In this document: piece by piece, positions 3,194 through 42,163 of the stretch
Numbering within the stretch: position 1 is the stretch's first letter
How the letters are laid out: each line of letters opens with the position of its first letter
Assembly (NCBI RefSeq): GCF_026571515.1
Contig: NW_026853081.1
Span: 186,001-250,000, forward strand
Direction of reading: 5' to 3'
Source: Ruditapes philippinarum
Taxonomy: Eukaryota
DNA length: 64,000 nt
The notes under the pieces: model-generated
The model's input: the letters and a program-made list of their open reading frames with translations, nothing else
Told to the model about the DNA's origin: nothing
Database searches by the model: none
Program-made: the position numbers and the translations under genes

Positions 3194-3329
3194 NNNNNNN
3201 NNNNNNNNNNNNNNNNNNNNNNNNNNNNNNNNNNNNNNNNNNNNNNNNNNNNNNNNNNNNNNNNNNNNNNNNNNNNNNNNNNNNNNNNNNNNNNNNNNNN
3301 NNNNNNNNNNNNNNNNNNNNNNNNNNNNN
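3194..3329. other. Assembly gap (N run)
   Basis: Run of N. Confidence 1.
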
Positions 3330-6806: not shown

Positions 6807-9800
6807 ATGTTTTTAATGATCTGGTTTGTTTATCTAGGTAAGTGTAGAAGTAATTTTCACAGTACTTTTTTTTAATTATTACTCATCTAACAATAAAATG
6901 TTTTTAACGAATACATATTTAGAAGTACAATTTCGCCTTATCAGTGATATGAAAGTGCCACATTGTACCCGAAATACTTGGATAGTTATTAGTTGATATT
7001 CATCTTAAAATTGAGGAAGTTAATTTTCTCTTTTTCCAGTTACACAAAGTAAAGCATATTGTATAATCTCAGTAGTCATTTGAACTCGAAACATTAAATC
7101 AAGTACATGCATACCAAATTGTTTTGTTGCTAGGTTTACATGATGTCATTTTTATTTGTCATTCAAATACAAAAACCTTGCGAAATATCTACAAGGTCGC
7201 AATAATTATTTGTTACATTACCGAGGCCACCTGGAAGGAATGCACTCGGTAGATTCATAGAAATGTTAATTTGTTTAGTTTATTTATTCTGGCATGTTAT
7301 ACTATTGAATATACCTTTCAATACAAGTTGTTGATTTTTTTACTTACAATTCTATGCGAAAATATTATTACGGCATTGAAAATGTTAAATTTAATTTCAT
7401 AAACTACTTTTTCACAGGTTCCGTGAATTCTTTTCCCGATAACTCATCAATACTATGCTTCCTTCATGAAAACTTTAAAAGCAGTCCTTGTAATGATGAA
7501 TCTGAATCATTGTCATGTTCCGAAGATCAACAAATTAGAATAAAAGAGATTCAGATCTCCAAAAGAACAACTGGAAACACTGGAATTTGTAATGGCTGCA
7601 ACCTACAAGCAAATCAAGGTCACTGGGATACAGTTGATGGAATTGTATATTTTGAAACGTTACTTTATCAGGCTTGCTCAAGAAAGAGCCAATGCAACTT
7701 CTCTCAAGATGATATAGTACAAAGCAACGAGACTACTAAATATTTATGGAGAGCCAACATAATGTATGAGTGTGTAGAAAAAGGTGAGCATTGAGATTTT
7801 ATTGCCAAATTGTACATATGTTTGCATAATAGTAGCATTAATTACATATGATAATTGACGACATTAAAATAATTTAATTAAATATATCACTACATCGTTA
7901 AATGCAACTAAATTATGCGATTAAAAATGTTATGATGCTGCTTAAGTCTATAATAATTTGTAAATAAATTATGTCTACCCATTTTGGAAAGCTGGTCAAT
8001 ATCCACATGTTTACATGTTAGAATGACATAACAATTCAATTATTCAAGTTGGCCGTGGAAGACTCAAAAACACACAAAACACGTCAATCCCCACAACTTC
8101 CGAAGATCTTGCAAATCATTCTGACATAGCTGACAAATTGCATGATAGGTTTTATATATTTTATCATATTGTCTTCAGATTTGTTCAAAGATTTATGTTC
8201 ACCATGGAGACAAGAAACAGACTCCGTACATATTTCATTGAATACAACTGGTAACGCTACAAGAAATTGTTCATGTAGCATTATGGGGAACTCAGAAAAT
8301 GCCAGTATAGAAGTTGTTGACTACAGGCCATATATTAATGATATTGAATGTGCCGGACATTCGGTTGAAATCGATTGTATAGACTTGTTTGAATGTACTG
8401 AGAATGGCACAACCTTTTCTGTATACAACAAAAATATTACAGTTGACAACAATGTGACCGACATAACATTTCTATTTGGTGATTATTTGCCTAAAATGAT
8501 ATGGATTCATGTAAAAGGTAAACATTAAACATCTTTTTCTACATGTTTAAAACATTTGAATTATATGATTTGATCTTAGTGAAAACAAAAAAAAAACATT
8601 ATATAATTTAAACATTGTATATTGCATATTCAACAGATAACAATGCTTATATGAAAATCACTTAAATTTTTTCTATAACCCTTATAATTGATTGATAAAT
8701 GTATGTGTTTCAATATTTCTATCGCGCATAGGCAATAATTTGACAGTCAAGTGTAATGATTCGGAATACAGGCCGGTGCACCTATGTAGCATGTCAACAG
8801 TGGATACCACATCGACAACGACGTTATCAACCGTACCAGAAACAGAAACAGTTCCAAAGATGACAACTACGGAAGAGTCAAATACTACAACGACCTTTCC
8901 CCCATTTAATAACGAGGGTATGTGCATTATAAACAAATAGTCCTTGTACCTTAAAAACTTTATGGTCTTATAAGACACAATCCGATGCTCAAATGAAGAC
9001 TTATCAATATGATAAGTTATAAAAAGCATATCTTATAAAGATATGACCGGATATAACAGTTCATGTTAATATAGGAAGGTTATAAAAAAGTGTTGTTTTG
9101 GTAAAGTCATGACAAAAAAGATGCATTTTTTTTAAAACTTATTTATAAAACTTTTTGTATAAATGTAACACATTTTCAGATGTCTGTATATTGTGTTGGT
9201 AGGAAACTTATATTCTGGTACATAGTTTCACTGAATTGTGCTTAACTGCATTAGTTTCAATGTACATACAGGATCTTTAAAAGAAAATAAACATGTCGTT
9301 TTTATTTATCTGGAGTTATGTATATGATTCCTCATTTGTTATTATGTATACCATGTCAGCTATTCATCATTTTTAGACTATAAAATATTTTCTTTGTTCG
9401 CTTTTTTTACATTCATATTAAAATTGAAGAGGGGGCATTCCTAGCCGAGTGGTAACGGTTGTTGACCTCAGACCACTTGTTCCTCACCGCTGTCCTATCA
9501 GGGACATAGAATTCGTTCATGTGAGGAACTATTTGGAAGGGGCAAATGAGGTCATCCTCTTTTAAAGTTTGTATGTCGTCATCTAAATTTCATTGTGACT
9601 TATAACTCATTAACAACAACAATAATAATAGTAATAAAATGAGGACCAGAGAAAAGATATTGAAATATTATTTTTGATCATTAAATTCACATACATGCCA
9701 AAATCTGATAATTAATAATTTGTTTTGACTTTAAGGTAGCACAGACAGAAGTATTTTCAGCCTTCCCGTAATAGCCGGAGGGTCAGCAGGGTTGTTGGCT

Positions 9801-10944
9801 TTGATTGTTATCATTACTATCATTATTTGCATCCTTTGCAGAAGGTAAATGCATAGCATATATTTGATACCTTATTTGATATAATGTTTAAATACATGTC
9901 AACATATCATTGCAAAAAAACCCCCATCGATTCTATGTAAGAGAACAAAACCTAAAATCGGATATATTACGTTTGCTTAAACATAAACACTCTCCCTACA
10001 GATAACATTTCGAGTACTTCATCATTCTGTTATAGAACTGGTGACATTCGGCTTCTTTAAAACAAATCAACAAATCTCTTCGTACATTGTACATGTATAC
10101 ATCAGGTTTACAAATTATGGCATTAATAGCTAGACTAATGTCAAATAATAGTTACTTAAAATGACACTTGTCTTACAGGAAGTCAAATACCAAAGATAAT
10201 GGCAAGGAGAACATGTACGCAGTATATCACGCTGAATCAAACACGGCGAATATATCGACTAGAACAGATAGTGCCACGAAGGAAGGTTATAAAACCGAAA
10301 ATAACATAGTACATATCACAATGAAGGATACATTAAACTCAAACTATGAAGAAGTAGGGAAGAATATAGAAGAAGCAGATGCTGATGGTGGTGGTGACGA
10401 CACTGTTTATGCAGAGCCAGCAGATGTTGTTGATAACATTAATGCAGAAACAGATACAGGTATGCAGATGTCAAATAAAGCTCAGAATAAAACCGAGAGT
10501 GTTAATTACACGGAACCGTACGATAAAGCTCTTGTTATTGATAATAAAAGCCAAAATGACTATGCCAAAGTCATAAAATGTGGACGGAAGAAAGAAGCGT
10601 ACGACACGTGCACCGGAATCGACAAATATTCACACATCCAGATTGGAAAGACTAAGCAGGTACCAAAAACTGAGGACAACTATTCTCATATACAAATAGC
10701 CGGGAATAAAAATGAAAGCTCGTGTTCAGGAAATTATTCCCATACCAAAGTGAGACCAAGGGATGAATGTAAACCTCAGGAATGTTCTGACATGTACAGT
10801 CATGTTGAAATCAACACCACAAAACAACAAGACCTAGCTGATACGGGAAATAAATCAGTAGAAGTGGATAACAATAGTACAAGCTTAGAAGAAGTGGAAG
10901 AAGAAGAAGAATATGACCATTTGAACAATTTTTCTCATCACTGA
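6807..10944 (+). CDS. R1: type-I membrane receptor (SUEL-like, CUB-like, Thr stalk, TM, Tyr-motif tail), 598 aa
   Basis: Exons 6807-6837, 7418-7783, 8179-8517, 8732-8917, 9736-9844, 10179-10944. GT-AG, phases 1,1,1,1,2, total 1797 nt open. Signal MFLMIWFVYLGSVNS; TM LPVIAGGSAGLLALIVIITIIICILC-RRK; tail SNYEEV, YAEP, YTEP, YAKV, YSHI x2, YSHT, YSHV, EEEEYDHL. Confidence 0.92.
9431..9620 (+). mobile_element. Degenerate tRNA-derived SINE in R1 intron 4
   Basis: A-box-like head tagccgagtggtaa, body catgtgaggaa, (caa)/(taa) tail. Confidence 0.55.
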
Positions 10945-11029
10945 ATTATGTTAATTATATTATTATTAAAGGGTTAATATGAATGAAAATTGTATGGGTT
11001 TTAATTCCCATCATCATTGTAGTCGTCAA

Positions 11030-11262
11030 AGGGTGGTTTTGTAGCTTTATTAGGGGAGAACGACCTCAGGTGCCACATCGTGCTTTATTTCAGGCACGAA
11101 CGGACGCCTGAGTAGAGTAGAACCACTGACGTTTCGTAAAGCTAGATGGACAGCTTCTTTACATGATGGAGTCCAAAGTTCCTGGTAGAATTCGAACCCA
11201 TAGTGGGGAGGGTCAATTTGTTTTAAGTCAGTAAAGTTTACCACTCGGCCAAACACAAACCC
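11030..11262 (-). mobile_element. tRNA-derived SINE
   Basis: Minus-strand A box (tggccgagtggtaa) and B box (ggttcgaattc); body atttcaggcacgaacgg..ctgagtaga shared with other copies. Confidence 0.7.
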
Positions 11263-13083: not shown

Positions 13084-16000
13084 ATGTTTTTAATTATTTG
13101 GATTATTTATCTAGGTAAGTATAGAAATAACTTTGATAGTACTAATGATCTGTGCTACTCTTCAACGTTATAAAATTCAAAATATTAAATTTTTAAGTGA
13201 ACAAATAATGTTGTATCACGTTAAGATATATTGCTCGGTATTTTCAAACTTAACATCGCGAAAGATTAATATGTACAATAAGATGATTAGATAATAATGA
13301 AGTCGAAAATTATCAGACGCATTTCTTTTCACAATTAGTTTCTTCCATATATTTGTGATTAACCAACCTACATTTTATCAATTTATGTGCCAAATCGATT
13401 TTTTATCATTCAAAGGTAGATTATATATAAGCATTATATATAAGAGTATTATTTTGCAGGTTCCGTTAGTGCCTTTCCTAATAACTCGTCAACAGTTTGC
13501 TTCCTTCACAATAAAACTCAAAGTTATATTTGTGACCAACATTCTATGCAGTTGTCTTGTTCTGGTGAACACGTGATTAGAATAAATAACATTCAAGTAG
13601 TGACAATGTCGACTGGACATTTGTTGTGCAGCAAATGCGAAACAGACTATACAGCAGGGGGATGGGATATAGTCACAGACAAAGTCATTGTATATTTTGA
13701 AACTTTGTTATATCAATCTTGTTCAAGGAAAAGCCGGTGTAATTTTTTACAAGACAATATACATACCACAGAGCAATCGAAATATATCTGGAAAGCAAAC
13801 ATAAATTTCGAGTGTGTCAGCAAAGGTAAGAAAAATTTACAAAATATCAAAGTATATTTTTAAAGATTATATTTCTTTTAATATCTTTAAATGTACATTT
13901 TTCAAACAACAACAACAACTACAACTACAACTACGACGACAACAACAACAACAACAACAACAACAAAACTACAACAACATTATCATTATTATGACCACCC
14001 CGAAGAAAAAGAAGAACAAAGAAAACAATGCGTGCCTGAAAACTCAATCCAAAGATCCTAAACAAACTGTCATTCGTAACTGATTCACAAAATATAGCTA
14101 TCCCGAACGAACTGTAAAGGGAAATGTTTACCAACTTTCAAAGCAAAACAAATCAACTTACATCAAAATGTTGTCCGAAAATTATGTTCAAGAAAATACG
14201 CAACGACGAGCAAAAATTAAATGGCTACTTACGAAGTATTTAACATCTCTTTGTTTATTATCAATATTATCAAATTTTACGCATCACTTTAGCGCATGTA
14301 TGAAACATTAAGATCTACACGTTTAACGGTATTACTACAAATTTAAATTCATGTTACAAATTTGTATTTCTTTTCTTATACGCAAAAGTCGCATTATTGA
14401 ATACTTAACCATTAACATTCTTACTTCAAAACTTTATATTACGGTGAAGAAAAAACTGCTTTTTTTAATTATCTATGTATCATTATATTCAGATTTATTC
14501 AAGAATATATGTTCACCATGGAAACAGAAAACTGACTCCGTGCATATTTCCCTGAATAGAACCGGTTATGCTACAGGTAACTGTTCATGTATTGTTGAGG
14601 ACTACACAGAAAATATCAACATGGAAGTTGTTGACTACAGACCATACGGAAATGATTTTAGATGTGCAGGTAGCACATTTTTAATTGGCGACACAGCCAT
14701 GCCTGAATGTGAAAACGACGGCGTAGACGTTTCTATGTATAACACAAAAATGACAATTATCAACAATGTAACTATGATATCAGTTTTATTTTCTGACTAT
14801 TTTCCACAAATGATATGGATTCACGTAGAAGGTAAGCACTGTTTTAAGATTTTGAACGATATGATTTAATTTATGATAATACAATGCGTTTATCAAATCG
14901 GTTATCAAATTATAAATCCATTTTATGATAGTTTTATAAGAATATGATAATGTTCAAGGAAAAAAATATTTTTTTTTGTAACGAGGGCTACCTAGCAAAT
15001 ATAAAATCGCATTTGACAAAATCGAATGAAAATTGTTAACAATGATTAAGCTATCAATATGTTAACAATTGTGTCATGTTCACACTTAATTGTAATGATC
15101 ATCAATACATCTAGTTGATTACGTAGATATTTTTTATATACTTTGTAATCAAAGTTAATGTTGGTAATATTTATTAGAAATATAAAACGTTAGAAATAGA
15201 AAATCTTACTGATGATTTATTTAAATATTCTGTGGTTTATGTAATGGACTTAATATATTTATGCTTACAGGTTTTCAAAAGCTTACCAATTTATGTATAA
15301 AAAGAACATACGCTTTGGAATTATATCAATTTCTATGTGATACATTGTTGTATCATTTTTAGGTAACAACATGACAGTTCAGTGTAATAATGAAGGTATG
15401 AGCTTAACAAGCTCCCCGTCAAGTTCCTCTTCCACTGATTCTATCTTCACAGATACCTTAACAACCTTACCTGAAAAAGACACAACAAAAGAAAATACTA
15501 TCACAGAAACAAATACTGCAATGACTACTTCCTCGTTATTTAACAAAGGTATGAATGTAACAGAAAAGTGGATGAATATGGTATTGCGTTTATCCGAAGT
15601 TTTGTCCATTTTTTGTTACATATAATGATTCATACTTATTCATTAATTTACATAAAATGCCAAATTATTCATTTTTATTTGTATACTTTACACATTTTTT
15701 CTTTCAATAATTTCGGAATAAAAATGTCAATGTTAACTTAAATATTGTTAGATTCAGGTGTAGTACCAGGTCTCTTTAATCTTCTTTAAATGTGGTAACT
15801 TGTGCAGGACTTAATAACCAACATTTGGCTGGACCGTAAAGTCGACAATGTCTTAACGAGCAATGAAATAATTACATATCACAGTCATAAAGATGTTCTA
15901 TTTAAGATAGAAATAACTTTGGCTTGTATGTCTCGATAATACATGTACAAATACTTGTTTCTTACAGGCGTCAAAGCCTTTAGATCTGTATATTTGCAAT

Positions 16001-18604
16001 ACCTTATTTTAACATCTGATAAAAGTGGGCTACTCTGTATATGTAAAAAATAAAGCACTGTATTTTACTGTTTCCTCATTATTCCTTACATTTCGAGGTA
16101 CTGTTTAATAGAAAAACTTGATTCACAAACAAGAAAGACTGTTAAAAGTTTACTAATTTTCTAAGACATCAAATTATATAAGACTAAGTATATGTTGTAC
16201 TTATTGATTATCCCTCATGTACAGACTGCAATTTTCATGTAATTTTGTTGTGACTTATGCTTCCGAGGGATCACTTTGTTTCCCGATTTTTGGTGTTAAT
16301 CTATTGTCCATAAAATATAAAAAGATTGCAAATGATTTTTATGCAAGCTACCTAGTATTTCAGTCCTACATATTATATGAATCCGCATTACAACACGCGA
16401 ATACCAATGCCACTTAATAATTCTTATGAATATGAAATGTAAGTTCAAAGTCTGATCGGGTCAAAGTGAAATAAGAATACAAGTTCTTAGATAATATTTT
16501 ATTAAATCGAAAAAAAATAATCTAAAGTCCATGTTTTTATTTATTTTTGCCTTAGAAATAAATAGAATAGCTTTTCCAGACATTACCACAATGAATGTGT
16601 TTTTACAAAAAGTTAAGTAAAACCTGACTGAAGTTTATCATTTTTAGCATATTTATATTAAAATCTGAGTTAACGAACACAAAAATATGTACGTTTTAAT
16701 ACAACGTTCTAAAACTGTAAGCTGTTTTCAAGTAATATGTAAATTATAAATGAAAAAGGGGCATAACTCCTAAAATATTGCTTTCAGAATATGGCCCTTG
16801 TCTAACAACTGCACCTTGTCAAGAAAAGCAAGTATCCAAAGTTTCATGTTGATATCTTTTAAAATGTTTGAAAAGTGAGCTACGTTAAAGTTTTTGCACG
16901 ACGATAACGACAACAACAACGAAGACGACGACAAGGACGACGACGCCGCAGCGATCAGAATAACTCGATTTTTACTTCGAAACAGACAAGCTTATAAATA
17001 TTTTTTTCATTGCAAATATGGCAGTATTTAGTGTTGGCAGTATCTTAAGCTAACAAATGCACATGCAAAAAAGTGATCAGTGACAAAAATTACATACATG
17101 TATAATTTGAGTAAAGTAAAAATACATCAACCACAAAATTCCGTTCACATTGCAAACCTTAATTCTTAAATTTATATTTAATAGATATGTGAGATATGTG
17201 GATATATTACAGGAAACGAAGACAGAACAATTTTCAGCCTACCGGTTATAGCAGGGGGCTCAGCTGGTCTGTTGTTTCTAGTTGTTTTTATTGCTGTCAT
17301 TATTTGTTTTCTTTGCAGAAGGTAAATACACGTATACATATACGTGAGTTAGGAACAATCATATTTATATTTAGATTTGAAAATCTGTGTATTTTTTGTC
17401 AGTATATTGCAAGAACACTGTTCGGTATTGGCGATCCTATATTCATATTATTACGTTAACTTGTATAATCAATTGTATTTTTGTTTGTTTGTTTTGATTG
17501 GGGTTTACGTCACACAAACACAGTATAGGTCATATGGCGACTTTCAAGCTTTACTGGTGGAGGAAGACCTCTGATGCCCTTCCGTGCATTATTTCAGGAA
17601 CGAACGGGCACCTGAGTAGAACCACCGACCGTTCCGTAAGCTAGCGAGATAGCATACTGACATGAAAAATTCGGAGACCCTGTCGGGATTCGAACCCAAG
17701 TGGTTATTAGATTATAATGTCATGTTTTAAAATGATAAATCGTACAGTTCTGGCGTTCTTCTAGCGTTGTTTATTCATTGAAATACTTAAATAATAGAAA
17801 CTAATTTAAGGATGGTAATAGAATTCAAAAAATGAGTCAAATACATACTTGTCTTACAGGAAACAAAACCAGACTTCCAAAGCTAAAGACAAAGAAAACA
17901 TGTACGCGCAATATAATGCTCAGTCAAACACAGCAAACATATCACCGATAAAGTGTGGTGTCATAAATCAAGGTTACGAAACCGAAAATAAAAGGGTTCA
18001 TATCGTACTAAAGGATTTTTCAAACTCAAACTACGAAGAAGTAGGAAGAAAAAATGAAGAAGCGGATGTTTGTGATTATGATGGTACTGAATATGCAGAG
18101 CCAGCAGATGTTGTTGCAGATAATATTTATGCTGAAACTTCCAAAACAGAGGCAGGTATTCAAATGTCACAAAAAGCTCAAAGTAGTATCGAGGGTCATA
18201 ATTACACGGAACCGTATGATAAAGGTCTTATAATCGGTACTGAAAATCAAAATAACTATGCCAAAGTGAAAAGTGGACAGAAGAAAGAGGCGTATGACAC
18301 ATGCGGTGGAATCGAAAACTATTCCCATATTCTTACTGGCATGATAAAACAAGCACCAAAAACCGAGGACAACTATTCTCATATACAAATTGCCGGAAAT
18401 AATCACGACACTTCATGTTTAGGCAATTATTCACATACCAAAGTGAGACAAAGGGAGGGAATTAAAGCTCATGAATGTCCAGACATGTACACACATGTTC
18501 AAAATGACACCCCAAAACAACAAGGCCTGTCTTACAAAGAAACCAAAGAAACTAAATCAGATGAAGAAGAATATGACCATTTGAGCAATTTTCCTCATCC
18601 ATGA
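13084..18604 (+). CDS. R2: paralog of R1, 591 aa
   Basis: Exons 13084-13114, 13460-13825, 14493-14831, 15363-15548, 17213-17321, 17860-18604. The first five exon lengths (31/366/339/186/109) are identical to R1. 1776 nt open. TM LPVIAGGSAGLLFLVVFIAVIICFLC-RRK. Confidence 0.92.
13904..13980. repeat. (CAA)n-type microsatellite in R2 intron 2
   Basis: caacaacaa.. with cta/cga variants. Confidence 0.9.
16750..16997 (+). mobile_element. Helentron-associated (HINE-like) repeat, one core unit plus (GAC)n and 3' end
   Basis: aaaaggggcataactcc..aagtttcatgttgatatc core, shared with the 48.7-51.7 kb elements, followed by a gacgac microsatellite. Confidence 0.55.
17483..17702 (-). mobile_element. tRNA-derived SINE in R2 intron 5
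   Basis: B box gggttcgaatcc on minus, shared body, (tttg)n tail. Confidence 0.75.
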
Positions 18605-22400: not shown

Positions 22401-22754
22401 NNNNNNNNNNNNNNNNNNNNNNNNNNNNNNNNNNNNNNNNNNNNNNNNNNNNNNNNNNNNNNNNNNNNNNNNNNNNNNNNNNNNNNNNNNNNNNNNNNNN
22501 NNNNNNNNNNNNNNNNNNNNNNNNNNNNNNNNNNNNNNNNNNNNNNNNNNNNNNNNNNNNNNNNNNNNNNNNNNNNNNNNNNNNNNNNNNNNNNNNNNNN
22601 NNNNNNNNNNNNNNNNNNNNNNNNNNNNNNNNNNNNNNNNNNNNNNNNNNNNNNNNNNNNNNNNNNNNNNNNNNNNNNNNNNNNNNNNNNNNNNNNNNNN
22701 NNNNNNNNNNNNNNNNNNNNNNNNNNNNNNNNNNNNNNNNNNNNNNNNNNNNNN
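22401..22754. other. Assembly gap (N run)
   Basis: Run of N. Confidence 1.
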
Positions 22755-24826: not shown

Positions 24827-27800
24827 ATGTTTCTATTTATTTGGATTCTGTATGTAGGTAAGAATAAAAATTAAAGAAGAAGAAGAAGAAGAAGAAGAAC
24901 GTTTATTTCACTTAAATGTCTTGTTATGTAAACTTTCATTTTTAGTAACATTCATATATACTTATTTTTTCTGTGTAAAATATTTAAATACTCACATTAA
25001 AACTTAATTAGGACAAAACAAGCTTAGTTGGTGCTCTGTACAATGTTGTTGATTGTTCAATGCTGATAAAATGTTATGACTTTCTTGAATGTTTACATGG
25101 TAACTAGCTTATGGAGAAAATTAAACCAATATTAACATAAAATGTATGCAAATATATTCATTGAAGCGGTAAGCTTCCGATTTTTTTTCTGAACAAAAGA
25201 AAAGAAAAAAGAAGAAAAAGAAATGTGTAAATTTATAAATTGGCATAAACCTTCTCTTAAGACTATCAACGGATGTTAACATCTGTGGTATTCATCGCAA
25301 GGTGGTCTCATCTTTGGATATCGTAATCGAGGCTAATATATTGGTTTTCTTTGGTCATTTTGTATGTTCAAACAGTATGTATTATAACCGACATATACTT
25401 ATGTAAATACATATGTTATAATGTCTTATCTGATAAAAGCAAAACTTAATTCTAGAGAAGTAAAATTGTATAGATTTGATATCTCTCATTGGTCTAAATG
25501 ATATATTTAATTATTTAAATTATTCACATATAAAATAATTATTTAATTGTTTACGAAACCAAAGTTTAACATCGCTTAAATTTATCTTCTCATTTTGCAT
25601 AATTGTTCACTTTGTATAATATTCCAGTCAATTAGGTTATAAAGTTATCAAGTATCAAGACCAGATAGATCTAATTTGGTCTTGCATTGATTATTAGTGG
25701 TCTCAATATTGGGGAAACTTAATAGAATAGAACAAAGAAATGGGACTGAAATTGGAGGTCTTAGAAGTAAAAAAGCAGGGTGGTCTTTATTGTGGATCAT
25801 GCTACAATTGAAGGACAGAAATTATCATTCTATAAAAAATGTCCTAAAAGAAGAATGATTTTAATTCCGGAATGGTCTTAATTGGGGTGTCTTACTAAGT
25901 CAAAGAAAGTTATAGATATCCAGAACCCAAGTGGCTCTGTAATGGGCAATTGCAAATTGTGATTATTTAATTGTCTATTAACATAATAGACACTCTGTGC
26001 TACATGGTATTTACTAAATTTATATGTTACAGGTTCCGTGAATTCTCTTTCGGACAACTCGTCAAAGCTATGCTTTGTCGGTGATGGTATAGTAAACGTT
26101 TTTTGTGAGAATAGTTCTACGGAATTATCGTGTTTTAATGATCACATGATAAGGATAAAAGGAATTCAAATAGAAAGTACTTATGAAAGTAGTCAGATGA
26201 ATGATTGTGGAAAATGTCCTCCTAATAATGACCCGCAAGATGAGTGGAAGAATGAAACGGATATTACATATTTTGAGGCATTACTGTACAAGGCTTGCTC
26301 CAAGAAAAGGATGTGTATTTTTACAACAAGTGATATTGGGAACGATAATCATGTCTGGACAGCAAATGTTAAGTATGATTGTGTTGAAAAAGGCAAGAAC
26401 AAACATTTTGTATGATACAGTTAATATTTTATAATACATTTGTGAAAGTCCCATAAATCATTATTTAATTCATATATCATTATTTTATAGTTTTAAATGA
26501 CTTAAAGGGACAACGTGGCAGGATGGTGGTATCTTAAGTTACCATATTGAACTTAACACAACATATTCTAATATTTCTTTAAATCTTATTTATGAACCTT
26601 TCTATGGTTTCATTTCTTTTATTTTAAAGATGTTAGAGAAATTCGAAATATGAATGCACAGTGCATATACATATCATATGTTTATCTAAGAAACACAGTT
26701 AACATTGCAACATTTTATTTCAAACTACACAGAGATGTCATTAATTTTATAAAACCTTAACATCCAAATAAAATGTAAACGATAACTTTATGTGATCATA
26801 TTATTGTATTATATGTATTATATACAGAATTATTCAAGGATATGTGTTCACCGTGGACAAAGAAAACAGACTCCGTTCATATTTACCTGGACAGAACTAA
26901 TAATGCGTCCAAAACCTGTTCATGCACCATTGAAGGCGACACGGAAAACACAAAAATGGCAATTGTTGACTACAGGCCATACACAGGCAACTCTAGTTGT
27001 GCTGGTAGCTCAGTTATAGTAGATGGTGAAGATATGTTGCAATGTACAGAAAACGGCACATACTTCTCAGTGTTAAACAAAAATATAACGATCATCAACA
27101 ATGTTACCAAAATAGCAGTTTCATTTTCTGATGATTTACCTCAGATGTTATGGCTACATGTCAAAGGTAAAAATAATTGTTCATATACATGTAAATGAGT
27201 ACATTCACATTTTCAAGATATCTTAAAGAACTCCAAAGTTCTCCTTCATGGTGACTTTATCAACTTTACGCGTTTATCATTAATATGTCTGTGCTGAAAG
27301 ATAATGACCATCAAAACATCAGCTTGATATGTCTTTCAAAAACTTACAATTATATAATACAAGCATAATATCTATAGAATTTATAAGAATATTATTTTTT
27401 ATGGATTTATATATTTTTCTTCTCTAGTTACTAGTATCGAGTTAATGTAGCGATAGCCGCATATTTTTCAAAAGTTAACAATTTTATTTTTAAAAGAAAA
27501 ATGTTTATAATAATTATAAGAGTTATATGATTTAGATTTAAAAAGGCCCAGTATGCACAAGAAATGCTTTCACTTTTAGTTCTTAAAGGTTTGTTGTATT
27601 GAAGTACTTTTATAGTTTCCTAAGAATACTCATTGGCCAATTATCTTAACCATTTTTCCCTTTTTGGTAATAAGTTCAGCGCCTTTTAACATATTGATGT
27701 ATCAATTTAAGGTATAAATATGACAGTTCAGTGTGGTAACAAAAATATCAGCTCAACCTTTCCATCTAGCTCCCCAACTAGCATCTCTACTATTGACACC

Positions 27801-29876
27801 ATTTCAACAGATACCTTAACAACCTCACCAGAAAAAGATACATCAAGGGTAACAACTAACACAGAGTCAAATACTGTAACGACTACTTTGTCGTTAAGTT
27901 ACGAAGGTATGTGCATAAAAAGATTAATATGGTTTGATTTATCTAAAATTTTGCACATTTTAGTGTCATGTTATCATATACAATAATTAAAAAGTATTCA
28001 GTTAGAGTCATATAAAAACTAAATCTAAACATCTAATACTTTTTACTTGCATGATGTGAACAAATGCTTCATCTTTAGAACGCTGATTTACTTATAACGT
28101 TTAGAAAACCACTTAAATTATGTTATTTGTTTGCAATTCCAAAACAAAAATATCAGTTCTAATCTTACTGCGAGATATATCTTTCACATTATTAATTTCA
28201 ATTTATATTAATTTTTATGTGTGTTTACGTTTCAGAAAACGAACATGAAAATGTTTTCAGCCTTCTGGTAATAGCCGGGGGCTCAACTGGTCTGTTAGCT
28301 GTAGTTGTTATCATTACCGTTACAATTTGCTTCCTTTGCAGAAGGTAATTACATACTAATATACCTACCATTAAATATTTCACTTTGATACTGAGTATTT
28401 AATGACTAATCATTTTTCGATGGTGTGACTGGCTAAGACACAGTCACAACAATGTCCATAGAAAATGACATTGACCTCGATACTAGTAAAACTTATTTAT
28501 AATTTACGTCATACGCGTGAAACATGACTTAGCTAAAGGCAACCAGTCATTCAAGGATTTACCGGATTTAGGGTTAAACGTTACGTAAAGTAAACATGCG
28601 ATGTAAATTATTGATTTTGGTATTACAAATACAAAAAGCGTTTTGCTTTGCATTCTAATGAACATAATAACATTGAGAAAGCGGTGAAAATGCCGAAGAG
28701 ACGTATAGCGTCTGCTAAGTAAGGACCTTTTTGCTTTAAAAAGGCTATCGGTCAAAATGAAAATTAAAAAAATGAAGAATTTTTTTTGCCATACAATTAA
28801 GAATTACTACAAGGTTATAAAAGTCTATTGACCTGATTAAACAATGCCCGTGGTATATAACAACTTGGACAGGTGATCATCACCATAACATCGCTGTATT
28901 ATCGGAATTTGCCATCAATTTTTGATTTATTTTTGTTCACTAGTGAAACACAATGGATGATTTTCAGGTTAATAAGTCAACATACAAGTATATCACAGGT
29001 GTCATTCATTCGTTGTTAATAAATTGAAATACTTGAATAAGAGTTACAAATAACATGATGGTATTAAAGTCAAACAGTGTTAAACATTTGTCTTACAGGA
29101 AATCAAATAGGACTACCAAAGATAAGAACAAAGAGAACATGTACGCGGAATATAATGCTCAGTCAAACACGGCAAATATATTTAATTTAACAATAAAGAG
29201 TGGTGTCATAAATCAAGGTTACGAAACCGAAAATAAAATTGGTGATTTCGAAATTAAGGATCTTTCAAACTCAAACTATGAAGAAGTAGGGAAGAAAAAA
29301 GAAGAATCGGATGATGGTAGTTGTGACGACAATGTGTATGCAGAGCCCGCAGATGTTGCTGATAACATGTATGCAGAAACATCCGAAACAGAGAATCTAA
29401 GACCACAAACAGAACAAAGTAAATTTGAGGGTGTTAATTACACTGAACCGTATGGTAAGTTCGTTATCACTGATAATGGAAGCCAAACTAATTATGCCAA
29501 AGTCATTAAAAGTGAGCGAAAGAAAGACGCGTATGACACGTGCGCTGGAATCGACAACTATTCACATATTCTTATTGACATGAAAAAACAAATACCGAAA
29601 ACCGAGGACACTTATTCTCATATGGAATTTCCCGGAAAAAACCATGACACTTCGTGTTTAGACAATTATTCACACACCAAAGTGAGACCATGGGATAGGA
29701 GTAAAGTACAAAAATGTACTGGTATGTACATTAATGTCAAAATCAACACCACGCAGCAAGACCTGATGGATAGAGAAACTGTTATAAAAGAATCAGATAA
29801 TAATAGTGCTAGTCTAGAAGAGGAAGAAGGAGAATATGACCATTTGGACCATTTGTCTTATCACTCTGTTATTTAA
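24827..29876 (+). CDS. R3: paralog of R1, 603 aa (intron 2 needs a GC donor)
   Basis: Exons 24827-24857, 26033-26392 (AAG|gcaaga), 26828-27166, 27712-27906, 28236-28344, 29099-29876. 1812 nt open. TM LLVIAGGSTGLLAVVVIITVTICFLC-RRK; tail SNYEEV, TNYAKV, YSHI, YSHM, YSHT, YINV, YDHL. Confidence 0.9.
24875..24899. repeat. (AAG)n microsatellite in R3 intron 1
   Basis: aagaagaag run. Confidence 0.9.
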
Positions 29877-33435: not shown

Positions 33436-34017
33436 GAAATTAAACACAAAAATACGAAAGTAAATCAAAAGGAAAACATATTCACGGTATATAATTGTCA
33501 GTGAAACACGGCAAATATATCAACGATAAGAGATTGTATCATAAATCAAGGAACCTGAACCGAAAAATGAAATTAACATGATTAATATAAAAATGAAAAT
33601 TGCTGTTAATAACGAAAACGTAGACCTAAAAGAAGAGGAATCAGAAAGAATCTCAGGATAATGATGGTAGTGTAAATCGTCCATGTGCAAAGCAAGAGGA
33701 TGTTGTTTCTGATGAAAGTTATACAGAAATTCCAAAAGCAGGAGCAGGTATTCAGATGTCATAAACACCAAGCAAATTACAGCAAGTCTCATAATTGAAC
33801 TGAACCGTTTGATAAGAGTGACCTCGTCATAAATAACTGACACTAAAATAGCAATGCTTAAGTCATAAAAAAGTTAACAAAAGAAAGAAGCAGATGCCAC
33901 ACATTTGATTGACACGCCAAAGCACCAAGAATTACGGATAACTGTTCTCACATACATACATAGTATATAGCCGGAAATAAACATCAACATTTATCTGTAG
34001 ATAATTACTCATACACA
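33436..34017 (+). pseudogene. R4: decayed cytoplasmic-tail exon of an R1-R3 paralog
   Basis: Acceptor context cttgtctttaag|g matches cttgtcttacag|g. Colinear blocks cagTGAaacacggcaaatata, ataaatcaagg, gcaggtattcagatgtcaTAA, actgaaccgtttgataag, atagccggaaataa. Several stops and frameshifts; I could not recognise exons 2-5 upstream. Confidence 0.85.
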
Positions 34018-36335
34018 ATTTCACAATTTACACAAATAAAATAAACAAAAATAATATTAAAGTGTATAAAGCTATATATCTGCTTCAGAATTATTGTTTG
34101 AATTTCACAAAAGAATACATAAAAATGGTAGATAATTGCCTTAAAAGCATGTGACGCATGCACAAAAAAGGGATAAAACCATACTTAAAATAGCAAATAA
34201 TATTTTGTTCCGGAACATTTTATTCTGTTTTCATACAATATTCACGTGTAATAAATACGAGTAACAGAGATATTCTATGTAACAACTTTTTCGGCAATCA
34301 ACCATATACTAATGAGACCAATATAAAATTAGATCTACTGTTGATAATATTTTTATAAAAATATTTCATTTTTGTTATTATTATTGTTATTTGTGCTCAC
34401 AATTTTTTTGTCTATCGACCCGATTTTGATCAATTAATCCCTTCGATTCAAACTAGAAATAAATTCGGAGCTAAAAAGGACTTTTTTGTCGAAAGTGAGC
34501 GAAAGTGAGCGAAAATGACATTAAAATGTGAATTATAGCATTTTTATAGAATTTTACAATATAATTGCAGTTTGTAGACATATGTTATTAGAAACTAATT
34601 ATATTTATTATCAAAAAGAATCATAATGATGATTTAATCGCTATTTATTTGCATACTTTCTATACACAATTTAGTATGAGATATCATGATATACCATTTG
34701 CCGCACATTTTGAAAATGTCGATTGGCTTTTCATATATTTTTACATAGGAATTTTAACATTTTTTTACTATAATAAGTTGTTGATATTTGTAGAAAATGA
34801 GTAGTATTACAGGAGAAAAAGAAAATGTATATGCTTTAATATTTTATTATCATCTTGTATTACTGACTACAGTAGTGACACACACAGAACAATGTTGCAC
34901 TGCTGTCATGTCACATTACAATTCTTGTTAGTCTTGTTTGTGTTGGAATTACTTTCCTTATCAAGTAGGCATAAGTGAAAGCATTTTTGAAATTATTATC
35001 TGGCCCCTCTCTCATTGACAGTGCATAGGATAAGTATAATTATGCGAATTTAAATGATTTACAAAACATTCAGAATAATGTACAATAGTACTTAATCTAA
35101 ATAGAAAATGACATGTGTGTAGGAATGATTTAGAAATGTATCTGTAATGAGTGCATTTCTTTGCGCGGAGCTCCTCAATTGATGCATTGCAGCAACATTT
35201 GTATTTGTTAGATATAGATTTATACCCTTTAAACAAAAATAAACCAGTATGTATAATCATGTTTAAATGGGCACCGAAATTCAGATAGAATCAGAAAATC
35301 GGCCTAATGGAGGGGTAAGCTAGGAGAATATGAAGACTGATCACTTGGTAATTTTTCACATCACATCATTATGAAATTTGTTTTCATCCAAAATAGATTC
35401 GTCCGTTCAAAGCTTTTTTTCATAATGCCTGTTGCAACTGTGATTTAATTATCAGTGATTAGTGACTATATCGTATTTAGTAAAACATTCATATCTTGTT
35501 TATATCAAATGCTTGATGTGTGCGCTTTAAATTGAACTATTCATACATTTTATTAAATACAACATGCCACTTGATTAAATGATAAACTTTCAAAAAAGTA
35601 TGTTTCCGCTTCATTGCACATTTTCTTTCGATTTCTTTTTATAATTGCATTATCATTTAGAAATTACTTAAAATAGGGAAAGGAGATTTTATCTAATAAA
35701 TTTGTCATTTTTTGCGTTCTTACATTTAACTAAACAAACTAATATAACATTAAACAACGAATGGTGAATCGAAACTTTAACTAGTTATGCTAAGTGCTCA
35801 CAATATTTTCAAGTCTGCTTTCCTACAATATTGAAGCCTTATATTAAAATATTATTATGTGCATTTCAGATTACCAGTAGGGAAATTGATGATATGCATT
35901 AATAATTATTATATAATGCTACTTTTCATGGTGCGCAGTCACCAAAACATATACACTCTATCGCAAACTTGCTTCAGTAACTTTGGATATCTTCCTGGTT
36001 AAGGGTGATGATTTATAACAAAATCGAAACTACAAAAATAAAAAGAACAACAACCCATAACAGACTCTTTATTGAAACATTTGGATTTGTGCAAACATAT
36101 AAAATACGATACATTATAGTACTCAAGCGTTTAAATAACCTTTTTAAGAAAATCATTCTATTTACTCAAGCTATTTAATAGCATTTCTATGTTTAACAAC
36201 ATGTTTTATTATCAGCGGAATGAAAAAGTTGATTTTTAATGTTTTATGACAGTAATGCTACGGAAGGGCAATTTTAAGATTTATTCTTTCAAATTTTGCC
36301 TTACTGCACGACTTGTCAGATAGTGGATTAACAGG

Positions 36336-39300
36336 ATGAAACTTTTTCTTATGTTGATATATATCACAGGTAGGTTTTTCTCATACATAAAAACATTAAA
36401 TAAAACGATTAATTAACGTTAATTTAACAGCTTTTAATTGAATGTAAATACAACTGGTACATCGAACTGATATTATAAACGTATTGAAAATTTTACAAAT
36501 TATAAGTAATTACTTGAAATGATATAATATAATAATATTAATAGAATATAATAATATTATATATTGTTACATATTTTCTAAATATTTCTTCAATTAAGTA
36601 AAAAAATAATATTAGCTGTAATAGTATTCCAAATTGTTTTAACATGATTCTAACTGCTGGATATTTTTTCAATGGAAATTTAATCGAACTACATAATTAT
36701 TTCCATTCTGTTGTATATTTATTTTGTAATTTGTCTAACAATACATATTGTATTTGCCTTATGGAATTTAACTCGAGAAATATATACATATGGAAAAAAC
36801 TCCTTACGTTTGAACTTTTTTATGGACATTAAGAGAACGCAGGTGTAATGTAACTGCTTCGATTAAGGTGGTTAGCTTATATTCACTCATGTTGAAATGA
36901 CTTATGAGGTTTTTGTTTGATTTCATTATTAAGGATAAATATTTAATAAGTGTGTAATGGAGAGTTACTTTTAAAGTAGAAATTAAAATCGGATAAAGAT
37001 GTGTACATGATAAGGATGTATTTGCTAAATCTAGAGACTAAAATCTATTTATTTCGTACATGTTAATCTTATCACCACCGTGCATCCGTTCATGTTTTGC
37101 CTTCATTATGACTCGGATTTCCCGAAAAAAAAACACAATTTATGCCATGCAATAAAACCGGTTTTATAGATAGGCGTCCGTGGAAGTATAGCAAATTGTT
37201 GACTTTGTCAGAAAAAAGAAGTAAACTTTAAATGATGTTAACGTTATCCATTTTAATGGGCAATATTGTTTAGATAAGTTAGATGCAGGGTATATGGAAA
37301 ACGCCGTTTGTTCTCTCGAAATCGTGAAAATTCCCTAATTAGTATTTGTTTTCCAGCGGTTAAAATTAGAAAACGCATCGCTTTCAAAATTTTGAAAGTT
37401 CGCCGATGATTGGCTGTTTGAAAACTCCCGAGGAGGTTACAGCCTATTGCTGATCGTCAGATTCTAATATGTAGCGTTATTTAAGAGCTGACTTTAATCA
37501 GATTGCCGCGAAATGTTACTTGAACATTTATAGATCAGAAAAGATAAAAGTCTTATTTATAAAGTAAATCTAGTATTGGTATTTTTGAAAGTGTTAACAG
37601 TGGAAATAAATAAGGCACTAGTAACTCGACAGTGAGTGTCTTGAATCGTGTGGATATTCGCAAAGTAGAAATATGGTTATAGTATCTTGTTTCTAAGTAA
37701 GTATTTAAAACAACAAACGTGGATATATTTTTTGTGCCTTTGGTGTTATTATTTTCAGAGCATTTATATCACGTGAAGTGTTATTCGTCAACTATTTGCT
37801 TAAGACATTACTTTGACACAAGTGATATCTGTAAAGGAAGATCTGACAGTCTTTCTTGTAGCCATGGTGACGTCATTATTATCGAAAGTATTCGTTATGC
37901 AAAAAGTGAAAAAGGATACAAGTCGTGCTCATACTGTTCAAATAAAAATTTAACATCGGATTTGGACATTAATCCAATTTTCTTCAAAAACGAAGTCTAC
38001 GAGTTATGTTCTCAGGAAAATAATTGTACACTGAGTGAAACATTCAAATCACCACCGAACATTAGTCAAAATAAACGCCAAACATGGTATGCCATCCTAA
38101 CATATGAATGTGTAGCTAAAGGTAAATATTTCATTTCAATCTGACACTTTTTGCCTTATCAAATCACCTTTTTGTAGATATCTCTGTTAAATCTTTTTTC
38201 TCAAAAGAGCAATATCAGCAAAAGTTTTCTTTCTTAACTAAGTGAAAAAAATCAGTTTACTATTACCGTCAATAATTTGGTTCCACAATCATAAAATGCT
38301 AATTAATAAGTTACAATGTGTAAATTTTATAGCACAACCTTTGATACAATATTTTGTCATTTTAAATTTGTGAAAAATATCTAATTAAAAATAACTCTAA
38401 GTCAATACTAGATTACTCGTCTGTATGATACATTTTAATATACAGGTTCAATACGTGACATGTGTTCATCATTTGAAGCTGTGATAAATGACAATGACAC
38501 TTTACATGTCTCACTGCTTGGAAAAGATATTGCTTCGCAACACTGTGGCTGTTTTGTACATGGCACTAAAGATAATACTGCTATTAATATCGTCGATTAC
38601 AGGTAATCAAATGAACATATTTGTTTAGCACCATGGTACCATCAGCGTTTCGAGGCCATGCTCATTTGTAAACGAATATGTTTAAAATGTCCTTGTCACT
38701 ATGTCTTTTTGCCTTTATAATACACATGAGCTTTCAATAAATTTCTCAAAGTCTCAATATCATAATAATCATAGTAATTTATATCTTATATCAACATTCT
38801 GAATCAACATTGGGGTGTTTGAGAAGAAAACAATGACTAATTGATGTATGGAAAAAAGATAATTAAACAAGAAGATATATTAATTTTGAAAGCATAGTTT
38901 GGTTTATTTACTGCTACAATTTGTGATTTTTTAGACCTTTTGTCGTCAGAATTATTATTACAAGTACTTTCTAATAAAATAACATTTAAATCATTATTAA
39001 TAGATATTCTAAATAATAGATTAATGAATATTTTTGAAGATTCAGGGGTGATGAACAGTATTTGAATTCTTTACTGCTTGTAAGGAGGCATAATGTCTGG
39101 TACAATTTTTTGAAACACACTTTTATCCAAGTAAAATAAAGTTGAAATGTCCAATTTGGAAAGTCATAGATATACTATGATGCAGATATTACCAGTAATG
39201 ATACAAATTTGTTTAAATTGTAAACAGAAAAAGGTACTTTGAACATGTAACGTCGTTGTATTTAGAAAAATAACCTTGACTGTTATGTTATAGACATAAT

Positions 39301-42163
39301 CTCTTTCATACATAGCTGCTATAATAATATAATAAAATAATCTCTTGTCATTATCATTATTACAGGCCAAATGATGACCATACTAAATGCACAGATGACA
39401 CTTTATTTTACGTAAATGGCGTACGGATATTTCAATGTTTGAAAACCATTTCAAATGAAGGCACGCATATTTATAACACAGCTATAAACATAACTGGTTT
39501 TGTAACTAACATGACGGTGTCATTCAAGGAAACGCTTCCAAAGATGTTTTGGATTACAATAAAAGGTACGAATATATATTATTTACAAGTTGAAATTTAA
39601 GTTTAATTTAATAGAATATTCCCGATCAAGATGTTTACTCTCAATTTCATAAAGTCAATTCAGTATATATATCTAATAACAAATGTAAAGACTTTGGAAT
39701 CATATGGTGAATAATAAGTCCACTATTAAAGTCTGTCAAGAAATAAATAAGATTTAATCAGATCTAATTTACCATTTGTTAAAACGGTTTGGTTAGACAA
39801 TTTTGTTTAATTGTTATGTTTTATATTATACATTTATACCAACATAAAATTAGCTAACCATAAAATTATTTATCTTACTCTATGAATATTGTTATTTTTC
39901 AATTTGTCGATTTAATAACAATTGTAAAACATCGTAAAATTTAAGAAGCACAACTCATGTGTGGTACACATATTACTTTAATTGCATAAATACAAATAAC
40001 TGCAGTTGAAAAAATCTCAAAAACCTATTAATGATCAAGAACATGATTCTGATAATATTTCCGGTTGAGCATTTGCTGGGAAAGTTAAAACCTTTGAGAA
40101 AAGACTATCTGTTATCAAAGACCACAATCTTAGATATACTCTTAATATAACCATTAGTCTGAATGAAAGTAATAAAAAAAAATCTGCTTATAAGAGCTTT
40201 ATAAATCATCACAGAAATTGTATTTTCATTTGAATGTATTCTTTTTCTTTCACAAAAAGGTGCCAACGTACTAGTTCAGTGCAATATTGTAAACAGCGCC
40301 ATCAGCCGATATACAAGTGTGCCAACATCTGTTGGAAATACAGACACATCACTAAACTCTCAAGAAAAAGCAAGTCATTTACCATCCGGTGGCATGGCAC
40401 AAACAACTCGACACACAGAAAAGTCAGGTAAATGACGACTGCGTCTAATTGAATAACATTCGATACTTTATATATTCTGTGATTATTTTTAATTTTTACT
40501 TTATTATCTATAATATCTTCATTTATTGTTTATAATTCAACATGAACTTGTGGATATTACTTACTTTAAAATTATAACACTTTATAACGATTTATGTGAT
40601 GAGAAGACATTTAAAACTCTTCTTTTTATTACATCTATAATCTTTAATATCAAAATTACTTCCTTGATTTACAGTTTCATTTATTACTATATCAATGCAT
40701 GGTTAACTCATGCAGTCATACATGAGAGTAATTGAAATAGTGACGCACGTAATTTAAATACCGTGTACTTAGACCGATTTATTAAAGGATATACTTTCTG
40801 TATGAATAAGGATCGTTTTAAAACTCAAAGCGTTTTATATCTATTCCAGTCAGTTCAGAAGTATTTACAACACCAGCTATAATCGGAGCAACTGTAGCAG
40901 TTGTAACATTTATGGGTATTATTGCAGTTGTTGTTTGGCTATATCGCAGGTAACCCTAATACCATATTAGCATACTTAATTTATACGACACATATTTATT
41001 TTACTTTTTCTTTGTTTTGATTATTTCAAATCATATGAAGAAGTTTGGAAATGCCCATTAGGACAAAGAAATGCTTGATTTTTTTTCTTCAAAAGCTTTT
41101 CATTTTTGTTGCCCTGTTGATTTCTAGAGAAAAAAATAAATTAAATAAATAAATAAATAAACAACCGTTTACCTACATAGTAATACGGTTAGTATAGCTA
41201 ATATTGATTTGGTATTTTAATTAATTGAAGTCAAAATACTACTAAGTTTACAGTTTGCTTCTCTTGTAAGTCAAAAAATTTCACATAAAGCACTACTGTC
41301 TAAGTGATAAGCGTCTAACATGCCCTAAAAGCATGAATTAAACAATATAAAAATTATATTTTCCATTCTTTAGAAAGAACGATTTTTTTTCTGAGGCAAA
41401 ATATGCCTTTAATCAGATCTCTTGTGAAAATGTAAAGATGCCATAAGTACTTCAAGCACAAATATGTCTCCAGTTTTAAAGGCTTATTCTGCCCCAGAAA
41501 TAATTTTATTTCTATTTCTCATTAGCTTTTTATATATATGTTTTTTATTTTTTGAATCCGGATATTGTTTCCAAAAATTTACTTATAGACCAAAAAGTTG
41601 AGCCATCTTTTTTTTCTGTTGTTCTTTGATTATAAGTACGGTTATGATTTAAAAACCATTATTCAAACGTTATTAAACTCATGCTTGGCCTTCTTAATGA
41701 AGGAAAATGTATTCGATTCTGAGGCAATTTGCCTTTTAGCCATTTTAACTTCAGAAAAACTTCTGTACAACAAAAACCCGAAGTTACTGAAGCTGTATAC
41801 TACAATGAAGGACACATTAATGGTGAATGCAGAGACGGTGGTAAAGGTGACAACGAGAATAATCTCTCTAAAAATAAAGTTGACAATCTATACATAAATG
41901 CGCCAAGTGCACCAGGACACGATAATGTAGAGAACATAGATAATGTTTACTTAAATGAAAATATGAAAGATTCACCTATTGCTGGGTCAAACAAAGGTGA
42001 ACAAACGAATGCAAGGAAAAGAGACAAAAATAAAACCAGAGAACACAATAATCAAGATACCCATTACAATGTTCTAGGAACTCCAGGGGAAGAACACACC
42101 TATTCGGAGTTAAATTGCTCTGGTGGAGACAAACATGCATATTACAATTTAGTTAAGACATAA
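36336..42163 (+). CDS. R5: divergent paralog with ITAM/YxN tail, 476 aa
   Basis: Exons 36336-36369 (MKLFLMLIYIT), 37759-38121, 38446-38602, 39366-39565, 40260-40427, 40850-40949 (TM PAIIGATVAVVTFMGIIAVVVWLY-RRK), 41755-42163. All GT-AG, 1431 nt open, same Cys skeleton as R1-R3. Confidence 0.88.

Follow-up and report, generated by a model that had tools for sequence, protein, structure and literature searches.

A very small, mollusc-restricted family of putative lectin-fold receptors with two types of tyrosine-rich tails at a locus of Ruditapes philippinarum

Known receptor pairs of vertebrates, among them CEACAM1 and CEACAM3, KIR, LILR and Siglec-5/14, are clustered paralogues on an immunoglobulin (Ig) or C-type lectin scaffold, with the same ectodomain architecture, unrelated tails and gene relics, and are nearly identical outside the cell. 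CLEC-2 and Dectin-1 are type II C-type lectins with a hemITAM at the N-terminus. LAT and PAG are multi-tyrosine transmembrane adaptors; Draper is a phagocytic receptor with an extended ITAM (immunoreceptor tyrosine-based activation motif). Known domains of the SUEL/Gal_lectin/rhamnose-binding lectin (RBL) type (PF02140; latrophilin Lec, CSL3, SUL-I) sit on a G protein-coupled receptor or in a secreted tandem lectin, and the sugar-binding motifs of SUEL domains are YGR, DPC and KYL. The tail of CEACAM1 has immunoreceptor tyrosine-based inhibitory and switch motifs (ITIM and ITSM), whereas that of CEACAM3 is ITAM-like (PMC5112662). The hemITAM is a single YxxL after a tri-acidic stretch and signals through Syk in CLEC-2 (PMC3576117). 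SIT is a multi-tyrosine transmembrane adaptor (PMC2193021). In the oyster, CgIgR signals from its ITAM through Syk to ERK (PMC6994640), and CgNCAM1 acts from two ITIMs through SHIP2 (PMC11841013). Described here is a cluster of four genes, R1, R2, R3 and R5, of the bivalve Ruditapes philippinarum. The window, that is, the whole stretch of DNA analysed, comprises 64,000 nucleotides (nt) of a 1.41 Gb genome assembly (contig C1568:186001-250000) and is AT-rich, with about 30% GC.

The locus is read as a small family of single-pass type I membrane glycoproteins, lectin-fold receptors that would signal via phosphotyrosine docking tails (probability about 0.6). The evidence that carries this reading is the structure of the genes, the transcription and splicing of R5, the SUEL fold, the rarity of the family and the selective conservation of tail tyrosines. 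Membrane topology, phosphorylation, partners with Src homology 2 (SH2) domains and any immune role are predicted from the sequence. The R proteins would act as cell-surface recognition receptors. Ligand-induced clustering would lead to phosphorylation of the tail tyrosines, and the phosphorylated tyrosines would dock SH2-domain proteins. The tail of R5 (subfamily B) would probably couple to a Syk-type kinase with tandem SH2 domains and also to Grb2/Drk; the tails of R1-R3 (subfamily A) would serve as multi-site docking scaffolds. The machinery exists in bivalves, as the oyster receptors use ITAM-Syk and ITIM-SHIP2.

With the R1 exon peptides, tblastn places the exons in register four times on the + strand of the window. 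Exon order at the R2, R3 and R5 places is as in R1; one isolated tail-exon relic is found in addition. All four genes have uninterrupted frames with canonical splice sites and common exon phases 0/1/1/1/1/2, in agreement with the sequence-only reading of this DNA, which had listed four intact tandem genes with a common ectodomain plan and common phases. Splice sites were taken from the DNA; the exon-2 donor of R3 is GC instead of GT. Joined coding sequences entered only the tests of the reading frames, the counting of motifs, the alignments and the tree; searches and folds were made exon by exon. The protein plan is a short hydrophobic N-terminus, cysteine-rich exons of about 120 and about 112 amino acids (aa), a Ser/Thr-rich stalk, a transmembrane segment (TM) followed by RRK, and a long tail. 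Ectodomains carry 6-13 N-glycosylation sequons each, with 13 in R1, and a single hydrophobic TM window is present in every protein (R1-R3 and R5). An extra intron in R5 divides the second ectodomain; the rest of its exon plan is common to R1-R3. R1-R3 are tandem duplicates.

6807-10944, + strand: gene R1, subfamily A, 598 aa; intact frame, AG/GT sites, phases 0/1/1/1/1/2.
R1 exons, + strand: 6807-6837, signal peptide; 7418-7783, SUEL-like; 8179-8517, beta-sandwich.
R1 exons, + strand, continued: 8732-8917, Ser/Thr-rich stalk; 9736-9844, TM; 10179-10944, tail.
13084-18604, + strand: gene R2, subfamily A, 591 aa; tblastn and intact frame.
R2 exons, + strand: 13084-13114, 13460-13825, 14493-14831, 15363-15548, 17213-17321, 17860-18604.
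24827-29876, + strand: gene R3, subfamily A, 603 aa; tblastn and intact frame.
R3 exons, + strand: 24827-24857, 26033-26392 (GC donor), 26828-27166, 27712-27906, 28236-28344, 29099-29876.
36336-42163, + strand: gene R5, subfamily B, 476 aa; intact frame, six junctions in spliced RNA contigs.
R5 exons, + strand: 36336-36369; 37759-38121, SUEL-like; 38446-38602 and 39366-39565, beta-sandwich.
R5 exons, + strand, continued: 40260-40427, stalk; 40850-40949, TM; 41755-42163, tail.

The GC donor that ends exon 2 of R3 (26392/26393, AAAG/GCAAGA) belongs to GC-AG, a recognised minor splice class; splicing of R3 is predicted.

R5 is expressed as an intact mRNA. Of the words sampled from the R5 region, 10-17% are present in 15 RNA runs from this organism, which is about the exonic fraction. 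Spliced contigs from three studies (X1, X3, X8) match every modelled exon end of R5, with GT..AG borders, and fix exon 1 at 36336-36369 (MKLFLMLIYIT-).

36369/37759, 38121/38446, 38602/39366, 39565/40260, 40427/40850, 40949/41755, + strand: R5 RNA junctions in contigs X1, X3 and X8.

A minor R5 junction, 36369/37357, has an acceptor lying some 400 nt upstream of exon 2; it leads into an early stop. At 37250-37449 a 77x depth spike in X3 suggests an expressed repeat. At the stalk/TM junction of R5 (40422-40427 / 40849-40850), TGCC replaces four letters in contigs of two runs and is an allelic or alternative-splice variant. Single-nucleotide polymorphisms between runs are dense across the R5 exons.

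The first ectodomain, supported by fold and sequence matches, is a divergent SUEL/latrophilin-type lectin fold. For its AlphaFold model, the top 11 Foldseek matches all belong to latrophilin or to rhamnose-binding lectins, with E 2e-3 to 2e-2; those named are latrophilin Lec, LAT-1, CSL3 and SUL-I. Ten SUEL/RBL structures are matched by VIA-align with Z 6.9-7.6 across 89-97 residues, the next unrelated fold having Z 3.9. By hmmsearch of PDB sequences, a profile from the window's four genes matches the lectin domain of LAT-1 at E = 7e-4; a profile of the Mercenaria/P0004 rows matches the same domain at E = 1.2e-4 and four more latrophilins at E 0.006-0.07. Likeness to the known domains extends to a fold match over the whole domain, the cysteine framework and the C-terminal ...YxCV ending. 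These agreeing matches bear out the SUEL-like label given earlier. Differences are found in the Pfam score, in the sugar-binding motifs and in the context. Bit scores for Pfam SUEL_Lectin (PF02140) are 14.9 in R5, 17.6 in the protein P0003 and 16.2 in the homologue P0008, vs a gathering score of 31.4 that no member reaches; R1-R3 give no match to this Pfam family. Positions YGR and DPC are unmatched in the HMMER alignment to LAT-1. KYL is kept in R1 only; R2 reads KYI. Unlike the known SUEL domains, that of the R genes sits on a tyrosine-motif tail.

In structure, the first ectodomain comes closest to latrophilin lectin domains that were solved in complexes with teneurin or TOL-1, both of them protein ligands. 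This favours non-immune adhesion or recognition (gamete, larval-settlement or neural), in which the lectin fold would bind protein, as that of latrophilin binds teneurin, and the tails would lead to cytoskeletal or growth signalling. The lack of YGR and DPC in the alignment, the small family and overall purifying selection point the same way. Between near-identical copies the ectodomain differs more than the tail, with 83-88% identity in the beta-sandwich exon vs 92-97.5% in the tails; this pattern is also known from reproductive recognition proteins. A non-immune role is nevertheless judged improbable: it receives no support from the expression evidence, ITAM-like tails with YxN sites are found more typically on receptors of immunity or phagocytosis, and tandem duplication with relics fits the turnover of environment-facing genes.

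The second ectodomain (about 112 aa) is a generic beta-sandwich without sequence relatives outside the family. Best matches of its model are tied among CBM6/35/36, BcsB, malectin, GOLD and CUB, with Z from 6.0 to 7.6 and no Foldseek E below 0.013. Foldseek places the CUB1 domain of C1s second (E 0.019), level with CBM35/36, BcsB and GOLD. By the wide VIA-align search, CBM6/35/36, malectin and GOLD have Z 6.3-7.6, and the first CUB is found at rank 50 with Z 6.0. Language-model features lean to CUB clusters (0.83-0.88) and serve as leads only. No Pfam match to CUB (PF00431) is obtained at E <= 1 for exons or homologues; among PDB sequences, hmmsearch with that part of the profile which covers the beta-sandwich gave no match, and there is no Pfam relative. 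The domain had been called CUB-like from the letters. CUB is one of many tied beta-sandwich matches and does not stand apart from sandwiches of the CBM, GOLD or malectin type; on the models, a CUB identity is possible and not established.

This is a very small family, restricted to molluscs and not described so far. Within the 1.41 Gb genome, lectin exon, beta-sandwich exon and A-type tail are all confined to the cluster of R1, R2, R3 and R5. The beta-sandwich profile matches seven proteins among 1.84 billion representatives. Among these are Mercenaria mercenaria XP_045198919.2 ('uncharacterized protein LOC123553237'), of 480 aa and with an R5-type tail, and P0008, a transcript-derived protein of 520 aa with an R1-type tail; these two are the full-length homologues from other species. 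The sole named relative and the taxa of the Atlas cluster are molluscan, which points to a bivalve origin. Pfam gave nothing above cut-off on all main exons and homologues, and literature searches turned up neither this architecture nor LOC123553237. Protein similarity searches with P0008 and P0003 returned their own clusters only, in a word-based, length-bounded search that says little. The A-tail alignment search, also word-based and length-bounded, returned only three near-identical tail open reading frames from metagenome contigs. The earlier statement that no named family is recognisable thus agrees with Pfam, the protein representatives and the literature.

Gene turnover, likewise claimed earlier, is supported by one relic in the cluster and by R5-like decayed copies on two other contigs, C8098 and C5070. 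The decayed copy reported between R3 and R5 is real and consists of the tail exon only; no other exons of it are left in the window (tblastn). It has at least 7 in-frame stops, and frameshifts.

33448-34092, + strand: A-type tail-exon relic between R3 and R5; tblastn pieces with 54-56% identity to the tail of R2.

On C8098, at about 121.7-124.35 kb (L031 2698-5349), partial beta-sandwich, stalk, TM and tail exons are found, with stops and frameshifts. On C5070, at about 10.4-12.3 kb (L030 390-2293), a lectin-exon remnant with a stop is found, and with it the first beta-sandwich half, which is 74.5% identical.

Tails of subfamily A are about 250 aa long and have 14-17 tyrosines (5.5-6.8%). In the alignment of R1-R3, 14 of 18 tyrosine columns are invariant (78%), vs 25% for other residues (Fisher p = 7e-6). 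Such selective conservation is strong evidence that the tyrosines are functional elements of these tails. The motifs were located by scanning, and their P values are from composition-matched shuffles.

R1 10339-10356, R2 18026-18043, R3 29271-29288, + strand: SNYEEV, ITIM-consensus match.
29487-29504, + strand: TNYAKV, ITSM-consensus match, R3 only.
R1 10627-10806, + strand: four YSH[I/T/V] motifs, spacing 18, 18 and 20 residues.
R2 18320-18499, R3 29559-29738, + strand: YSHx series, spacing as in R1; in R3 the fourth is YINV.
R1 10903-10923, R2 18563-18583, R3 29826-29846, + strand: C-terminal acidic EEEYDHL, hemITAM-like.

The YSHx series and the C-terminal motif are the best supported. YxH[ILVT] occurs five times, counting YDHL, with P < 5e-5, and three of these sites are conserved in P0008. 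Tails end in EEEEEYDHL (R1), DEEEYDHL (R2) and EEGEYDHL (R3); P0008 has KEYDHL. EYDHL is invariant in R1-R3 and is the best-conserved motif in this distant homologue. The acidic EYDHL that closes the A tails resembles the hemITAM of CLEC-2 and Dectin-1; by this analogy, the best-conserved motif of subfamily A looks activating rather than inhibitory. It differs from the hemITAM receptors in its position at the very C-terminus of type I proteins and in the presence of 13-16 further tyrosines, and a link to Syk would be by analogy.

SNYEEV is invariant in R1-R3, as stated earlier, and in their near-identical copies from metagenome contigs. A single ITIM match is found in about 31% of shuffles (P about 0.31) in a tail with 14-17 tyrosines, and so is not beyond chance. 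P0008 is without SNYEEV; the membrane-proximal half of its tail, including SNYEEV, VYAEP and NYTEP, is not conserved in the alignment. TNYAKV is confined to R3, again as claimed, the site being NDYAKV in R1, NNYAKV in R2 and NNYAKV in P0009, a near-identical copy of R3; the ITSM threonine of R3 is thus not fixed. On these three points the inhibitory label given to R1-R3 is not supported. By their letters, the A tails may be inhibitory, activating or mixed in sign. Conservation of the tail tyrosines in homologues is partial: three YxH[ILVT] sites and EYDHL are kept in P0008, and YYN and Y[I/V]N of R5 in Mercenaria, whereas P0008 is without SNYEEV.

Yxx[LIV] occurs six times in each A tail (P 0.004-0.012) and four times in R5. 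These counts, and a lectin-like ectodomain on a mucin-type stalk, would suit endocytic or scavenger receptors in which YxxPhi sites are mainly AP-2 sorting signals for ligand uptake and not docking sites for SH2 domains. Such receptors are very unlikely here. The 14 conserved tyrosines far exceed sorting needs, with YxxP, YxN and YSHT sites among them that do not fit YxxPhi, and neither ITAM-like spacing nor a regular periodicity of 18-20 residues is a feature of sorting signals.

The tails resemble those of SIT, LAT, PAG and Draper in being long and disordered and in having a large number of conserved tyrosines, set in mixed contexts (YxxV/I/L, YxxP, YxN). Mixed contexts would suggest several SH2 partners. 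The R proteins differ from the transmembrane adaptors, which are without a sizeable ectodomain, in carrying two folded domains outside the cell; the sequences show no similarity.

The tail of R5 has 135 aa and no similarity to the tails of R1-R3. An ITAM-spaced pair and four YxN sites had been reported in it, and both are present.

42065-42151, + strand: R5 C-terminal ITAM-like region, YNVL-x8-YSEL overlapping YSEL-x9-YYNL; motif scan.
41798-41806 (YYN), 41891-41899 (YIN), 41948-41956 (YLN), 42140-42148 (YYN), + strand: R5 YxN sites; motif scan.

YNVL-x8-YSEL has P = 0.007 (spacing 6-8), and two overlapping matches have P = 0.0003 (spacing 6-12); for four YxN sites P = 0.03. Conservation in Mercenaria is partial. 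AVYYN and LY[I/V]N of the R5 tail are kept in the alignment, and YKNL-x10-YCKL of Mercenaria aligns with YSEL-x9/10-YYNL(V) of R5. The YNVL half of the canonical x8 pair lies inside an R5-specific insertion, lacking in Mercenaria. In the decayed copy on C8098, YNVL is now YNVQ (Leu lost) and YSEL is now ISEL (Tyr lost); this is relaxed constraint in a pseudogene. CgIgR and CgNCAM1 are likewise bivalve type I receptors with ITAM or ITIM tails. They are Ig-superfamily proteins, single genes and tested experimentally, whereas the R family is without an Ig domain and known from sequence.

Paired receptors are a further explanation for two tail types in one cluster. R1-R3 would be inhibitory and R5 the activating partner, with the same or related ligands and opposing thresholds in haemocytes, and the system would have evolved independently of that of vertebrates. 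Physical clustering, the architecture common to R1-R3 and R5, the invariant ITIM consensus of R1-R3 and its copies, an ITAM-like motif of R5 unlikely by chance, and relics that point to turnover all speak for it, as do ITIM-SHIP2 and ITAM-Syk signalling in bivalves (PMC11841013, PMC6994640). The YSHx spacing of 18-20 residues would suit bidentate tandem-SH2 phosphatases. Pairing is considered unlikely. Against it stand the frequency of a single ITIM match in shuffles, the loss of SNYEEV with the membrane-proximal tail half in P0008, and the ITSM threonine that is not fixed. Furthermore, the motif that subfamily A conserves best is a hemITAM-type acidic YxxL, a type with an activating role in CLEC-2 (PMC3576117). 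A narrower version, in which bivalves would have built the pair on a scaffold that is neither Ig nor C-type lectin, evenly spaced YSHx phosphotyrosine pairs of subfamily A, as a new class, would recruit tandem-SH2 phosphatases and subfamily B would signal via its ITAM-like/Grb2 tail, with opposing thresholds for one ligand class, is likewise unlikely.

Kinship of the ectodomains also speaks against pairing. Identity is 46-56% within R1-R3 (R1 vs R2, 56%) and 29-30% between R5 and R1-R3. The ectodomain tree separates R1, R2, R3 and P0008 from R5 and Mercenaria, with moderate support (84/87) and long branches. This split follows the type of tail; the tail types would thus mark two subfamilies older than the species split. 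With ectodomains about 30% identical, a shared ligand is not implied, and the similar ectodomains expected of paired receptors are not found. From the sequences, A and B look like two old subfamilies and not like recent partners with a common binding face. In comparison with CEACAM1/CEACAM3, KIR, LILR and Siglec-5/14, the R genes share clustered paralogues, the same ectodomain architecture, unrelated tails, of which one has an ITAM-like motif and the other an ITIM-consensus match, and relics. They differ in a scaffold of SUEL-lectin fold and beta-sandwich, in old lineages with divergent ectodomains, and in an ITIM that is neither statistically supported nor conserved. Of the proposed independent analogue of paired receptors, the clustered paralogues and two tail types stand; similar ectodomains and a conserved ITIM beyond chance do not.

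Among R1-R3, dN/dS (nonsynonymous to synonymous substitution rates) is 0.16-0.66 in all domains, and the lectin exon has the highest dN; by domain there is no sign of positive selection among these genes. dS is 1.4-3.3 (saturated) in the lectin exon vs 0.5-0.66 in the tail, the range for TM, stalk and tail being 0.5-1.0. The contrast was measured on 7420-7782 vs 10180-10941 in R1 and on the equivalents in R2 and R3. It may be due to gene conversion of the 3' halves, to mosaic origin or to saturation alone.

Several points weigh against the interpretation as lectin-fold receptors with docking tails. Both domain models are of moderate confidence (pLDDT, predicted local distance difference test, 66 for the first domain and 67 for the beta-sandwich). 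Given the unmatched YGR and DPC motifs, the ligand may be protein and not sugar. Tyrosine conservation fits phosphotyrosine signalling without proving it, and the YxxPhi sites may be sorting signals. The expression evidence covers R5 only, with runs and tissues coded; a raw-read RNA run (X23) gave no reads on R5, with about 6% of the run sampled, too little for a test. The family is small, unlike many expanded families of invertebrate immune receptors.

A probable fifth member, R0, very divergent by its sequence, lies head-to-head with R1 at the left edge of the window.

124-457 (approximate), - strand: R0 beta-sandwich-like exon, probable fifth member; hmmsearch E = 4.8e-4, the R0 piece being left out of the profile.

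Stalk, TM and short-tail exons of R0 are found left of the window, in L032 (C1568:178001-188000) at about 6040-7611 on the - strand. The Thr-rich stalk exon begins NVTVNC. The TM exon is ALAGGGGGLLLILVIVCVIAVKRR, and its TM reads ALAGGGGGLLL...KRR. A possible short tail with two tyrosines (DYEMDKYVMD) would be a third tail type. Upstream exons of R0 had been taken by eye for SUEL-like; the family lectin-domain hidden Markov model gave no match to them, and that assignment was dropped.

The cluster includes one assembly gap, between R2 and R3.

22401-22754, strand not applicable: assembly gap (N run), intergenic R2/R3; no family exon within 2 kb.

The gap begins 3.8 kb past the R2 stop and ends 2.1 kb before exon 1 of R3, with AT-rich non-coding flanks. 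It breaks no exon or frame, and so the scaffold is needed solely for the physical adjacency of R2 and R3. A second N run, 3194-3329, lies between R0 and R1, outside the cluster genes. A gene unrelated to the cluster is found on the - strand at about 45250-47180; its exons include an EGF-like one (CECHGTFRGPDCSDD...) and others rich in cysteine.

Outside vertebrates, most known receptors with tyrosine motifs have an Ig scaffold. In the R family, a SUEL-lectin fold, coupled to a domain without known relatives, carries ITAM-like and multi-tyrosine tails. A lone ITIM pattern match means little in a tyrosine-rich tail. The family is very small and therefore tractable. It would be a compact test of whether vertebrate-pattern tails of invertebrates signal the vertebrate way, and of which partner binds the conserved, regularly spaced YSH[I/V/T].

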